From Ostrea edulis (Eukaryota), in the NCBI RefSeq assembly GCF_947568905.1, contig NC_079170.1:46500001-46564000 (forward strand): a stretch of 64,000 bases of DNA, in the 5' to 3' direction. The notes beneath the pieces are model-generated. The model did no database searches. It was not told the DNA's origin and saw only the letters and a program-made list of their open reading frames with translations. Position numbers and translations under genes: made by a program. Below, one piece after another: positions 5,830-13,000 of the stretch; within the stretch, counting starts at the first letter, position 1; every line of letters begins with the position of its first letter.

Positions 5830-8800
5830 TCAGTCTTTCATTTCTCCTTCTTCATCTTCTTCTTCCACTCCACGTATATAGAGCACATTGTTACAGCGTA
5901 TGAGTACTTCTCCTAGATTTCCTGTCTGAGCCCCATCAATGTATTCTTCTGTGTTGGCAAGCTATAAATACACAAAATATATACATACAACCTCTGTCGG
6001 GCAGTAGGGACAATACTCTCTAACATACAACCATTACTAGACAGTGGCGAGAAGCGAGTGTGCTTACCACCATTTACCGAGACTCACTCTATGCCAGTTA
6101 ATTGTAATGAACCATTCTGAAACTCAACAAGGTTTCTTACATTTGCAAGATGAAAGTGGAACAAATAATTCAGCATAGTACACAAGTTATTAGGTGGAGA
6201 CATTTTATAATGAGAATCAGAATGTAGAGACTGCGACTTCAGTGATACTGGACAAAGATATCTTTGGCCAGTGTATTATATGTTCCTTGCCAAAGACATT
6301 CCCATATATGAAACTGTCGGTGGGACTAATACCCTTACAGGACACATAAAACTATCAGCGGGACTAATACCCCTTACAGGACACATAAAACTATCAGCGG
6401 GACCAATACCCTTACAGGACACATAAAACTGTTAGCAGGACTAATATCCTTACAGGACACATAAATCTGTCATTGGGACCAATACCCCTTACAGGACACA
6501 TAAAACTGTTAGCTGGACTAATACCCCTTACAGAACACATTGGCATTTTGATGGTGGGAAATGGTGAATTTTTGCTCAATGAAGAATAAGGAATCAGTGG
6601 TTTTTCCAGATATACTCTGGACAATGACAACATAATACCCCTCTCCCCCTCAAAATGTAAACTCCTTGAATGTTTTAAAACATCTTAATCAAAACAGCAG
6701 GTCCACAACTTCATTATTTATAGACAATATCATGTCTACAAACAGACAAGGTAAACCTAGTATAACCCCTTACTTTGTCTACGGGGAGTATAATTATGGG
6801 TACCCTTGATATGTATAATGGGAGATCATTCTACATATCAAAGGTATCCAAATTCTTGGAAGGCCTGTGCCATCATGTAAATGTGTTGTGTTGTAAAAAC
6901 ACTACAAAGTTCTACTGATTAGCTGTTAAAAATGTTGGACATATTTAAATTTTGTAACACTAAATAGTTTTTGGATTAAGCAAGAGCAGTAAGCATGGAC
7001 GGTAACAATAAATATTGTTATAATAGACATTGATTTTCAAAATTTTGAAACTGTAAAATAAATAACACATAACGTTTTACCTGAAGGTTCATGTAGCCAT
7101 CTACAGATACTAGATATCCCTTGTATTCCATGCCCCACTTTAGCTTCACCATCACGGGTTTACCTGTCAGTCCATTCAGAAACGGCTTAGGGTTCATAGG
7201 AAGAGTCTGCAATATATTGAAAAGTTAAACAGCCTGTGGGTTGACATGATCTCTACTTAAGTGTGTAAGCATGCTGCCATTTTCAGTTTCCATACAATTC
7301 AAGATTCTCAAGATTTATCTGATGCTTCTATGTAAGGGAGAGCATTCAATGAGAATGAACCATGACGTAAATTTTGACATACTCAATTTAGAAATATACC
7401 CATCCTAAATAAATCTAAAGGTGGGGGATGCGATTGATGAAAATGGATTCAGAATAAATGTATTTCAAATAAACGTGATTTCAAATAAGTGTAGTCCTGA
7501 ATTTGCTATCTTGATTTACGAGATTGATTGGCCCTTCATTTAAACAAACTTGAAAGCCCTTCATTCAAGGATGCTTTTTGCCAAGTTTTGTTGAAAATGG
7601 CCCAGTGGTTCTGGAGAAAAAGCCGAAAATGTAAAAAGTTTACAGACAGACGATGGACAGCAGGCGATCAGAAAAACTCACTTTCAAGAGCACAGCGACC
7701 TCTAACAACTATAGTGCATGAAAATGTCCAGTGTTGAAGATGTACAATCATCTTGAAAAATTCCTCGACACAATCCTAAAAGTCCCTCATCAAAAATGGC
7801 GAAAATTTTGCAAAGTCACATCTTTCTGATTTCAGATAACGAATTTGCATACTGGTAGATTATCAATCTTGATTTCATTCTAGTCTTGTGGTCTCCAGCA
7901 CAATGCACTGAACGCTGTATGCCACATTAGGCCTAATGTACAACAAATTGTACTACCAGGACAACATAAGAGATGCGTGACACCATGGTCTACAGTTTGA
8001 CATGATAATTTTTATATCTAACTGAAGCAGTGACGGATCTAGATTGGGAATTTGTTTTGTAGAAAAGAAAATAACAGTTCTGTGTTTTCTGTATCTGTGA
8101 AAGCAACACCTCACATTCATTTACTAGCTTTGACTGTTTGGCATGCATGGTGATGCAAAACAAAGTGATAGCTGCCCCCTCCCCTATTAGTAGACACCAG
8201 AATATTTCTGGACAGATCATATACATGTAGCTGCGCTCGCTCTAATCAGTCTAATCAACATATTACACACAGGGTGACCTGAGTTAGTTTAAGTGAGTTC
8301 ACTAGTCTAAGTAGCAGTCAAACAGGTTTGATTGCTGGTGGTCAGACACAGGGGCCTTTGGGCCAGATAGCTCATTTGGTAGAGCACTAATCTCGGTTGA
8401 GATTTGGCTCAGCTGAATACTGGGACTGATGCCTTCACCGAATCTCGGAGCAGTCCTTCATAATTCATGTCTGGAAATTTACTTCCAGCTTCGGCCAGTT
8501 CTAACAATTAATGTGCACTTATTTGACACTGCTGTTTGCTTCAAATAAGTGATTTGACTATCAAACTAACTCTTTATCACTATTAATTTTGTATTGCTTA
8601 CTGTCCCAAAATGAAAATAGGCACTAAATTTTCCGTTAAAATGAAGACTTCCATGGCACAACATTTTATCTCCTGGAATCGAAGAGTTCCTATAGTCTGC
8701 TTTATCTAGTTACTGATGCATTGTATCTCTACATACCTACTTGCATTTCGCTAATTTAAAAAACAAACTATAGGAACTCTTCAATTTTGGGAGATGAAAT

Positions 8801-10092: not shown

Positions 10093-13000
10093 ATGGGAGT
10101 AGTTTGGTGGGTAAAATATCCACGAATTGTATTCTTAGGCAACTTTTCCAATGTAAAAACAAATAATTTTCACTAGCATAGCAAAGAGTGTGCAAGTTTA
10201 GTCACAGTACATAAATATGAATGACCACCAGCCTAGGAAATTCGGGATGTAGGATTTGTTTACATCCAAATCTGAAATACTCGTGTATATTGGAGTATTT
10301 AAAGCAAGACCACTTGAATAAAATAATAAACTATTTCCTTAATACACCATTGAATCAATATTTATCATGTTATGATACCCGGAGTAGAGAGTCATTTCTG
10401 TTAACTTCAAATTATTTAAAAGTGCTGTTATTATTTTTGAACTCAAGTGCCAGTGAGCAAGACCCCATAAAAAGCATGCTTTAGGACTGGAATATTCATA
10501 CAAGTAGTTGACAAAATTCTTCCAATTAGCCTAGAACAAACGAGTTAACATATATTGAATAAATATGTAACACGAAGGGAGAAAATGCAACGGACCAGAC
10601 CGGGTTTTCGAACCTGAATCACTAGTCAAGTGCTCTACTAATCTCGGCTGAGATTCGGCTTGGCTGAATATTTAGACTGAAGCCTTCACCGAATCTCAGA
10701 GCAGTCCTTCATAATTCATGTCTGGAAATTTACTTTCGGCTTCGGTCGGTTCTAGCAATTAATGTGCACTTAGGTGACACTACCTTTCGCTTCAGAAAAG
10801 TGATTTGACTGTTAAACTAATCTCTATCACAATTAATTTTACCGTCTAGGTATGAAAATCCCAAAATGAAAATAGGCACTAAATTTTCCGTTCAAATGAC
10901 AACTTCCATGGCACAATAATTTATCTTCTGAAAGTGAAGAGTTTATATAGTCTGTTTTATCTAGTTACTGATAGGTTGTATCTCCTCATACCTATTTGTA
11001 TATCGCTAATTTAAAAAACAAACTAATAGGAACTCTTCATATTTTGAAGATAAGATATTGTGCCATTTAAGTCATCATTTGAACCGAAAACTTTAGTGAT
11101 AGTTTATTTTATGGAATAAACATTCTTATACGGTAAGTAATGCAGCTTAATAGTGATACAGATTTGTTTTAATAGTCAACTACCTTATTTGAAGCAAACA
11201 GCAGTGTCACCTAAGTGCACATTAATTGCTAGAACATATTAGAAAATATTATTGTATGTAAATCAAGCCACATCTTTTACTAAAGCATTTTCTTAAAGCA
11301 GAGGATGCAGGGTACCACAGTCTCATTTATTACGTGTAATCATTTTAATTTCTGCAAAATGAGCACAGAGATCTCTAATTTTTAGAGTCAAACTCCAGTT
11401 GAAATGTTTAAAGTTTGTGAAACAGCAATTCTTTCACATGTATGATAGTCTGATATATGATGATTTGATTCTTGTGCCATGTTGGAGACTATGGTAGGGG
11501 TTTAAGTTGTGGTTAATCAGGGGTCGAAATTAACTTTTTCTACCACAGGCTAATTTTAGCCTGTGGGTAAAAAATCCACGGGCTAAAATAAAAATAATGA
11601 AGCGGTGCTCTTTTTTATATTTTTTTTAAATCAATGATTTTCCCCATCATTACTGAGCCTAGTGGGTCAACAGGCATCGTTTGGACAAGACACTAAGTTA
11701 CATAAGTCATATGGTGCAACATTTAGGTCTCTTGATTATCGCACCTCTAATCCACAACTTGTTTACCGCAGGTCTAGATCCAGTCTTCCAATTTCATACC
11801 ACATCAAGGTCGTCACTAGTGATTTTTTAAAGCGAATACCGGATTCATGATTTTATAAGCAGCACGATCACGAGTCCTATCAACTTTTATGATAATCGTC
11901 TACGCGGTGAGCAGTGCACTTGAGTCATCACTACAACCCGACCTCAATATGACAATAAATTTAGATAGGACATTCTCATGATTCTGATAAAAATAACTAG
12001 CGGAAGATTTGGTAAAACATAGACTCCGATATTTTTTTAGATAAAAGAATAACAAAAACTTCATACTTGGAATTCAATTTAATCACCCCTATAAGTGAAC
12101 AGGACTCGTGGCACATGTTGATATGTGATGTCCTACCTCTAAAACATTTGTTTGACTCCGAGTTTCTTAAAAAATCATAAAAGAAAAATCTGGATAGAAA
12201 CGGTTGTTGAAATCGGTCGTTGATGTAAAGCGTTTGTATGATTCAGAGTGCAAATTTAAGAAAAGCGAATAGCGCATCACCGTGTAAAACAGATACGATC
12301 ATAGTTTGTAAATCACCACTCGCTAAGATTTTCGAGTATCCACTATTCTTACTCGCTATTTTTCAAATGTACTCGCATTTTGCGAGTATTTCTCGCTAAT
12401 TTCGAGCCCTGGGTTAATGCACCTAAACTAGACTTTGTGTGATCCATGGGTATGTTATGTTAGCACCAAGAGTTCTTTATTTTGATCGTACCAATGCCTA
12501 CAGCGAGTCTGTGACAGAAGACGTCCAAAAGACAACTTTCACTTCAGATGGCTCAAACTCACAAACTACCAATCACAAAGTGAATGCATGTTTAATGAAC
12601 TGTATTTTTCAGTGTGTTTTCCTGCCCTGTGCCTGAGGGCAAGAGTGGACAGCAGGTGGTGGATGGCCTCCAGAAACAGGTGGAGATGATGGGGGCTAGC
12701 AAGGCAGGGAACTTTCTGGTTGACTGTGAAACTTACCAGTCCAATCCTCAGAACGTCATGCAGACAGGTGAGTAGTACCAGCTGTCCTTGTCAATTAAGA
12801 TCATAGTGAGAGGCGTACAAGACTGTGAAATGGGCACACATACATTACAAGATTGTGAAATGGGCACATATACAAAATTGTGAAATGGACACATATACAT
12901 TACAAGATTGTGAAATGGGCACATATACGTTACAAGATTGTGAAATGGGCACATATACATTACAAGATTGTGAAATGGGCACATATACATTACAAGATTG

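Follow-up and report, generated by a model that had tools for sequence, protein, structure and literature searches.

Can two neighboring insertions of a transposon at the same nine bases reveal an element that targets tRNA-like sequence? This question is raised by a 64,000-nucleotide stretch of the Ostrea edulis genome (RefSeq assembly GCF_947568905.1, contig NC_079170.1, forward-strand positions 46,500,001 to 46,564,000), which is referred to below as the window. It contains two copies of a miniature inverted-repeat transposable element (MITE), and both adjoin the nonamer GTAGAGCAC within sequence that resembles the D arm of a tRNA. A preliminary description of the window proposed that the MITE is specific for such targets. 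Searches of the whole genome (894.8 Mb in 10 chromosomes, C1-C10) reveal that the MITE family is not target-specific and that most of its copies reside at unrelated sites. The nonamer is nevertheless a real, position-exact and statistically strong insertion hotspot, located in the long terminal repeat (LTR) of a small retrotransposon called Helenus. We consider it quite probable that a promiscuous family of cut-and-paste MITEs, probably Mutator-like, has repeatedly entered this base-exact site in the D arm of Helenus and that the two insertions in the window are independent of each other.

Two MITE insertions in Helenus LTRs

MITE copy 1 is a nearly complete hairpin. Its first and last 17 nucleotides are exact inverted copies of TAATCTCGGTTGAGATT, and its arms of 176 nucleotides exhibit 88% complementarity and are accompanied by further inner arms. 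When copy 1 is folded as single-stranded DNA, one long hairpin is predicted with a free energy of −218 kcal/mol (z = −24.9 relative to shuffled sequences). No open reading frame (ORF) longer than 58 amino acids is present in copy 1, and Tandem Repeats Finder identified no array within either of the two window copies. The element is flanked on both sides by an exact 9-bp duplication of the nonamer, as had been noticed previously. Its short length, noncoding character and inverted-repeat termini, together with the duplications found in 30 elements and the 1,576 genomic ends described below, are those of a MITE.

Copy 2 is collinear with copy 1 (76-96% identity) and its terminus at 10639 carries one mismatch. 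The left side of this copy adjoins GTGCTCTAC at 10630-10638, which is the reverse complement of GTAGAGCAC, and thus the earlier observation that copy 2 lies beside the same nonamer on the other strand also holds. Copy 2 breaks off at 11235, and therefore a second duplication is not visible and the event is one-sided. The asymmetric central loop is in plus orientation in both copies, where it forms a direct repeat with 88% identity over the loop. At both copies, an inverted repeat runs 26 nucleotides from the MITE into the host sequence.

Both hosts are Helenus LTRs (Table 1). Copy 1 resides in the 5′ LTR of an element that spans approximately 8311-9410, whereas only 10565-10638 is left of the minus-strand LTR that hosts copy 2. 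Helenus is a tRNA-LTR terminal-repeat retrotransposon in miniature (TRIM), also named TRIMp3, that was described from oysters and other animals (Kojima 2024; PMC10886601). The tRNA-like part of molluscan Helenus was aligned with tRNA-Lys in that study, which also proposed that TRIMp3 carries an RNA polymerase III (Pol III) promoter. The repeat in O. edulis has a period of 237 bp; single units, units with an additional partial unit, and tandem arrays are all found. In a consensus built from 70 genomic units, ARAGORN calls a 73-nucleotide segment of the LTR tRNA-like, with an oversized anticodon loop. Direct repeats that carry a tRNA-like unit and surround a short internal domain are the hallmark of Helenus, and this organization is seen in the period, in the 73-nucleotide unit and in the alignment of 9100-9410. 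A search of the window with ARAGORN and Rfam found no tRNA. Judged from these alignments, the cloverleaf predicted in the window corresponds to the tRNA-like segment of a Helenus LTR, and is neither a tRNA gene nor a tRNA-derived short interspersed element (SINE).

In the ARAGORN numbering of the consensus, the nonamer comprises the last G of the A box and D loop, the 3′ strand of the D stem, position 26, and the anticodon stem's first base. The oyster elements match published Helenus elements (PMC10886601) in the LTR-plus-internal period of ∼237 bp, in the tRNA-Lys-related 73-nucleotide unit within the LTR, and in the presence of thousands of LTRs, solo LTRs and tandem arrays. The host itself is ordinary, and its use as a hotspot for a DNA transposon is not mentioned in PMC10886601, whose text contains neither the word "MITE" nor the word "inserted".

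Table 1. Features of the two insertion loci in the window and further insertion events at the Helenus nonamer
Feature	Coordinates	Strand	Details
Helenus (tRNA-LTR TRIM) 5′ LTR, part before MITE	8311-8387	+	Alignment to 70-unit consensus; start agrees with consensus LTR start
Left target-site duplication GTAGAGCAC	8379-8387	+	tRNA-like positions 19-27, mapped via ARAGORN call on Helenus consensus
MITE copy 1	8388-9099	+	712 bp, complete noncoding foldback
Right target-site duplication GTAGAGCAC	9100-9108	+	Sequence match
Helenus remainder: rest of 5′ LTR, internal domain, truncated 3′ LTR with CTAGAGCAC at 9380	9100-9410	+	Consensus alignment, score 189
Helenus LTR fragment, nonamer to natural LTR 3′ end	10565-10638	-	Consensus positions 70-152, score 114
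MITE copy 2	10639-11235	+	597 bp, right arm truncated; inverted relative to host compared with copy 1
Insertion event	C10:12393856-12393959		104 bp, GTAGAGCAC both sides; also read in fetched L036
Insertion event	C2:46780554		One-sided, related subfamily, other end lost
Insertion event	C1:22441193-22441338		146 bp, GTGGAGCAC both sides
Insertion event	C4:17556133-17556218		86 bp, GTATAGCAC both sides
Insertion event	C1:21614345-21614944		600 bp, GTAGAGCAT both sides, ends TATTC...GAATA
Insertion event	C2:91225274-91225340		67 bp, flanks GTAGAGCAG / GTAGAGCAC
Insertion event	C10:38248512		One-sided, GTGAAGCAC
Insertion event (L028)	C3:33490428-33491134		10-bp GTAGGGCACC both sides, homologous position in diverged Helenus LTR

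Insertion sites of the MITE family

A whole-genome search with copy 1 returned 1,763 first-look candidates, at least 40 of which were scored as copies with 86-90% identity. Ends that differ from the 17-nucleotide terminus by no more than one mismatch number 1,576 genome-wide. The family is estimated to consist of roughly 800-1,500 copies of ∼70-720 bp, plus related subfamilies with similar termini. Many members are short deletion derivatives of 69-150 bp.

The sites occupied by these copies are diverse. Among 29 other full-length copies fetched by their similarity to copy 1, 28 are surrounded by unrelated sequence rather than by the nonamer site. Similarly, the nonamer is absent from the first 100 listed of 442 flanks that were retrieved by the MITE terminus. 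Target-site duplications were read in 30 elements that had not been selected via the nonamer; they are 9 bp in 20 elements and 10 bp in the remaining 10, and their sequences are unrelated to one another. A target matrix derived from the 60 half-sites of these elements yields a weak consensus of ∼4 bits in total, which includes a G as the first duplicated base, A or T at position −2, and a base other than C at position −4. The diversity of duplications, which the preliminary description had itself named as an outcome that would speak against its proposal, rules out a strict target specificity like that of Dada transposons.

The data also do not support a broader targeting of tRNA-like A boxes or D arms. 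A genome-wide search with a generic pattern that combines an A box with the MITE terminus recovered copy 1 and two probable chance matches, and had low power. Likewise, tRNA-Lys(CTT) genes share this nonamer and none of the copies seen is interrupted, but these are too few to provide more than little power. Two possible causes of targeting were examined and rejected. One was sequence homology to the Helenus LTR, but the best local alignment of the MITE terminus is no better than that of shuffled sequences. A shared subterminal repeat at equal distance, in the style of Dada, was not found by inspection; the hexamer GAGATT occurs 11 nucleotides inside the MITE end and 7 nucleotides outside the duplication. 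As a separate observation, the terminal 9-mer of the MITE, TAATCTCGG, recurs in identical form as the 3′ side of the anticodon arm in tRNA-Lys(CTT) genes (C1:85025596, C1:105234839, and at least nine others), and these genes also carry GTAGAGCAC. This match may be a coincidence.

Some copies of the family have spread by routes other than transposition. A related subfamily with the terminus TAATCTCAGCGAGATTCG (for example at C1:694902, C2:2294153, and C4:19907374) contributes at least 652 ends. Approximately 58 copies of this subfamily share an identical 16-nucleotide outer flank, ATGGTTTGAACCGAAC, on one side only. It hardly ever occurs apart from the MITE terminus, which argues for amplification of a composite and against a second hotspot. 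Three MITEs located ∼40 kb apart at C2:12.92-13.00 Mb (L021, L023, and L024) have the duplication GTTTATTCCC in common, and the copies at C1:96808646 and C1:108197797 have near-identical flanks. These MITE copies, like some copies of Helenus, are segmental duplicates and not transpositions.

Recurrence and independence of insertions at the nonamer

Junctions between the nonamer and the MITE terminus were searched genome-wide, followed by searches in which the 9-mer that separates the terminus from the Helenus flank was left free. One degenerate junction search produced mostly noise, and only two of its rows were used. Including copies 1 and 2, at least 10 insertion events were identified at the nonamer, seven of which are two-sided (Table 1). 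The event called L028 is of particular value, as it came from the 29 copies fetched by similarity to copy 1 and was thus not ascertained through the nonamer. Its host LTR aligns to the Helenus consensus over ∼150 nucleotides. Two MITE insertions outside Helenus, L035 (C8:19395898) and C1:63274787, have duplications (GTAGAGAAC and GTGGGGCAC, respectively) that are one or two bases off the nonamer. These two were retrieved by nonamer-biased searches, and reversed-pattern controls gave about as many.

The recurrence at the nonamer is far above chance. There are 6,634 uninterrupted Helenus-type sites in the genome, as defined by no more than three mismatches to a 21-mer. If the 1,576 ends of the family and the 652 ends of the related subfamily are taken together as an upper bound of 2,228 insertions, then a uniform distribution predicts at most 2,228 × 6,634 / 8.95e8 = 0.017 events, versus at least 10 observed. 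The single match among the 29 unselected copies has a probability of ∼2e-4 under the same uniform model. The proposal of recurrent nonamer use therefore stands, but not as evidence for a dedicated target. The preliminary description also pointed to two cloverleaf copies with mutated nonamers, at 9380 and 58258, that are uninterrupted. Both are indeed intact at this site. However, this provides no information about targeting, since ∼6,600 canonical sites are uninterrupted as well.

The position of these insertions within Helenus is also exact. On the target matrix, the canonical offset ranks only ∼17th among the 237 offsets of the Helenus consensus, and offsets −28 and +30 have the highest scores. 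A search design based on the right junction recovered seven events at the canonical offset and none at −28 and +30, where just native LTR variants or noise were obtained. Exact gapped scans of left and right junctions at offsets −46 to +45, across the tRNA-like part, gave matches at the canonical offset only. These results demonstrate that insertions favor this site over the remainder of the LTR, a difference that the simple matrix does not explain.

Several lines of evidence establish that the insertions at this site are independent. In four events, a private variant of the nonamer (GTGGAGCAC, GTATAGCAC, GTAGAGCAT, or GTAGGGCACC) is present on both sides of the insert. A variant can be duplicated only if it was present in the LTR before insertion, and therefore these four events are separate insertions into separate LTR copies. 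In addition, insert length ranges from 67 to 712 bp and more than one subfamily is represented.

The two window copies can be distinguished by similar reasoning. They share 87% identity, which is lower than the identity of either copy to many copies elsewhere. In a maximum-likelihood tree, a branch with 97/95 support separates copies 1 and 2, which are not sisters. The Helenus-embedded MITEs placed in this tree, namely copies 1 and 2 and L028, are scattered among copies that reside outside Helenus. There are 32 positions that distinguish the left arm from the right arm of the MITE, and at these positions the copy 2 arm in contact with the 3′ half of its host LTR displays 24 left-arm and five right-arm states. 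In copy 1, it is the right arm that touches the 3′ half. The arm states are inverted along with the loop, and therefore the entire element has the opposite orientation with respect to its host. A duplicated composite whose loop had flipped is thereby excluded. For the same reason, a loop flip caused by arm-arm recombination was rejected as the origin of the orientation difference. We conclude that the two window copies are independent insertions, as had been proposed, and not descendants of one amplified composite, the origin that the preliminary description had named as the alternative.

Mechanism, alternative explanations, and associated repeats

The duplication length and the long inverted repeats are the only characteristics that link this family to a superfamily, and they suggest that it is probably Mutator-like. 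Duplications made by Mutator and Mutator-like elements (MULEs) are ∼9 bp (range 8-11) and vary within a family, a range that includes both lengths found in the 30 elements. Merlin transposons, whose duplications are 8-9 bp, represent the main alternative. The label "Mutator-like" in the preliminary description thus fits these two features. Among terminus pairs on chromosome 1, no exact pair is more than 2.2 kb apart, and a literature search for the terminus string returned nothing relevant. One candidate for an autonomous partner, a 3.18-kb element at C2:3065578-3068759 (L067:1079-4260), was rejected because it consists of a MITE interrupted by a nested insert and has no ORF longer than 172 amino acids. 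This locus has a 10-bp duplication, CTACGGAGAC, and the nested element of ∼1.95 kb has its own 37-nucleotide inverted ends.

Comparison with known systems reveals both similarities and differences. The oyster family resembles MULEs and their MITEs in its 9-bp duplication that varies to 10 bp, in its long inverted repeats and hairpin, and in its many short deletion derivatives. Foldback-type members of the MULEs include Drosophila FB and nematode Tm1 (PMC3169594). Unlike classical FB elements, the arms of the oyster MITE lack tandem subrepeats as judged by Tandem Repeats Finder. As a putative MULE-type MITE with a target bias, it is comparable to MuTAnT, a MULE family of Medicago with a marked bias for TA microsatellites (PMC4486113). 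However, the bias of the oyster MITE differs in that it concerns a single base-exact site in the LTR of another transposon, and the family is otherwise promiscuous.

Dada transposons are the natural comparison for insertion into sequence derived from small RNAs. These elements generate 6- to 7-bp duplications, have no terminal inverted repeats, and reside almost exclusively in their target genes (PMC3706591, PMC8869645). The oyster MITE is similar to Dada in the base-exact reuse of a site within multicopy sequence derived from a small RNA, and in the use of this same site by internally deleted derivatives. It differs in its 9- to 10-bp duplications, which were found in 30 of 30 elements, in its very long inverted repeats, and in the fraction of copies located in the hotspot, which is ∼1-3% or fewer.

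The most likely mechanism is as follows. A nonautonomous foldback MITE inserted independently into two neighboring Helenus LTRs at the same 9 bp. Movement would occur by cut-and-paste transposition with a staggered cut of 9-10 bp, presumably catalyzed by a Mutator-like DDE transposase acting in trans. The hotspot, GTTG-GTAGRGCAC-CT in the D arm of Helenus, exists in ∼6,600 copies and has received at least 10 insertions by the MITE family and its close relatives. Either the transposase itself, or a factor bound at the Pol III promoter-like site, might select the D-arm sequence. As the cause of the hotspot, we favor a model in which the conserved D-arm stretch is read out directly; the two diverged LTR subfamilies that took insertions have this stretch in common. 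A specific form of this model, in which a transposase (probably of a MULE) has high affinity for the ∼15-nucleotide motif GTTG-GTAGRGCAC-CT and yet tolerates almost any site, is put forward only tentatively.

Several points weigh against the hotspot reading and its mechanism. No autonomous partner or transposase was found, and the enzyme and superfamily are deduced from duplication length alone. Three events are one-sided, and five of the 10 (including C1:22441193, C4:17556133, C1:21614345, and C2:91225274) are known only from matched strings of 24-35 nucleotides. Two events that end in TATTC...GAATA and a third whose terminus has diverged are putative members of the family, and the membership of the two TATTC-ended inserts and of the 86-bp insert is probable. 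The offset scans covered just −46 to +45 of the Helenus unit, and the target matrix is derived from a small set of 60 half-sites. On this matrix, the copy 1 site scores 5.0 bits, within the top 0.7% among 43,959 random positions, and carries ∼25 times the average weight. The enrichment is thus partly ordinary sequence preference multiplied by high copy number.

This last point could be extended to the view that there is no special hotspot, and that a weak general preference acting on ∼6,600 good-scoring sites explains the recurrence. We regard this as quite unlikely. The 25-fold weight raises the expectation to ∼0.4 events, which is still far below 10, and the two top-scoring offsets, −28 and +30, have no insertions in the same search design. 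Amplification of one ancestral composite of Helenus and MITE, through retrotransposition, gene conversion or segmental duplication, would also place many inserts at an identical, inherited junction. Such composites do occur, as indicated by the ∼58 related-terminus copies with one identical flank and by several MITE copies that are segmental duplicates with identical duplications. At the nonamer, however, this origin is very improbable, given the four private variants, the differences in insert length and subfamily, the inversion of copies 1 and 2 (which are not sisters) relative to their hosts, and the presence of host LTRs from diverged Helenus subfamilies.

A strictly target-specific, Dada-like transposon that enters only tRNA-like A-box or D-arm sequence was suggested by two insertions at an identical nonamer within 2.3 kb, and additional insertions at this nonamer elsewhere in the genome agree with it. 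We give this possibility almost no credence. The great majority of copies are located elsewhere with unrelated duplications, ∼99.85% of the ∼6,600 target sites are empty, the generic A-box search yielded nothing beyond copy 1, and both the duplication length and the inverted repeats differ from those of Dada. A general lesson is that two coincident insertions in one window are insufficient to define a target-specific element. Alternatively, the hotspot may be a matter of chromatin. Mutator elements favor open promoter chromatin, and TFIIIC or other Pol III factors that occupy the A and B boxes could expose or bend the DNA just past the A box. The failure of the simple matrix to explain the site is compatible with this idea, and the duplication begins at the last A-box base of the predicted Pol III promoter (TRIMp3 proposal, PMC10886601). 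Nevertheless, this explanation seems unlikely. No insertion was seen at the equivalent place of other A-box sequences or of tRNA-Lys genes in searches of low power, and base-exact reuse over diverged LTR subfamilies fits sequence read-out equally well.

Target choice by Mutator-like and foldback elements of animals is poorly known, and a hotspot that has been reused at least 10 times and exists in thousands of near-identical copies provides a ready substrate for distinguishing whether DDE transposases choose sites by sequence read-out or by recognition of a promoter bound by Pol III factors. Such a hotspot would also illustrate how strict specificity of the Dada type could evolve. If high-affinity reading of the D-arm motif proves to be correct, the family would occupy a natural middle ground between promiscuous DNA transposition and target-specific transposition. 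It would also constitute a second independent route by which DNA transposons reach multicopy sequences derived from small RNAs, with Dada being the first. There is a practical consequence for annotation as well: Helenus LTRs split by a MITE will be miscalled, and their tRNA-like halves can resemble broken tRNA genes.

Additional repeats were also observed. The Helenus element that hosts copy 1 carries a second small insert of 81 bp (9241-9321) with perfect 15-nucleotide inverted ends (ATCCGAGATTCCTCC / GGAGGAATCTCGGAT). This insert is flanked by a 13- to 14-bp direct repeat, (T)AAGGAAGAATGTA, of Helenus internal sequence, a duplication longer than cut-and-paste elements usually make. The Helenus at 58213-58480 of the window has a twin with 99% identity at C7:46605999, which is 47.8 kb downstream. 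Short-period arrays (periods of ∼54 and ∼38 bp; C2:54299486-54300688 and C2:101869886-101870096) consist of the Helenus D-arm segment AGCTCAGTTGGTAGAGCAC, and a separate clustered repeat that contains GAGAGCACCTGACTAGAGATTCT is located at C7:2.3-3.6 Mb. Both types of repeat have the appearance of minisatellites derived from pieces of the tRNA-like LTR.

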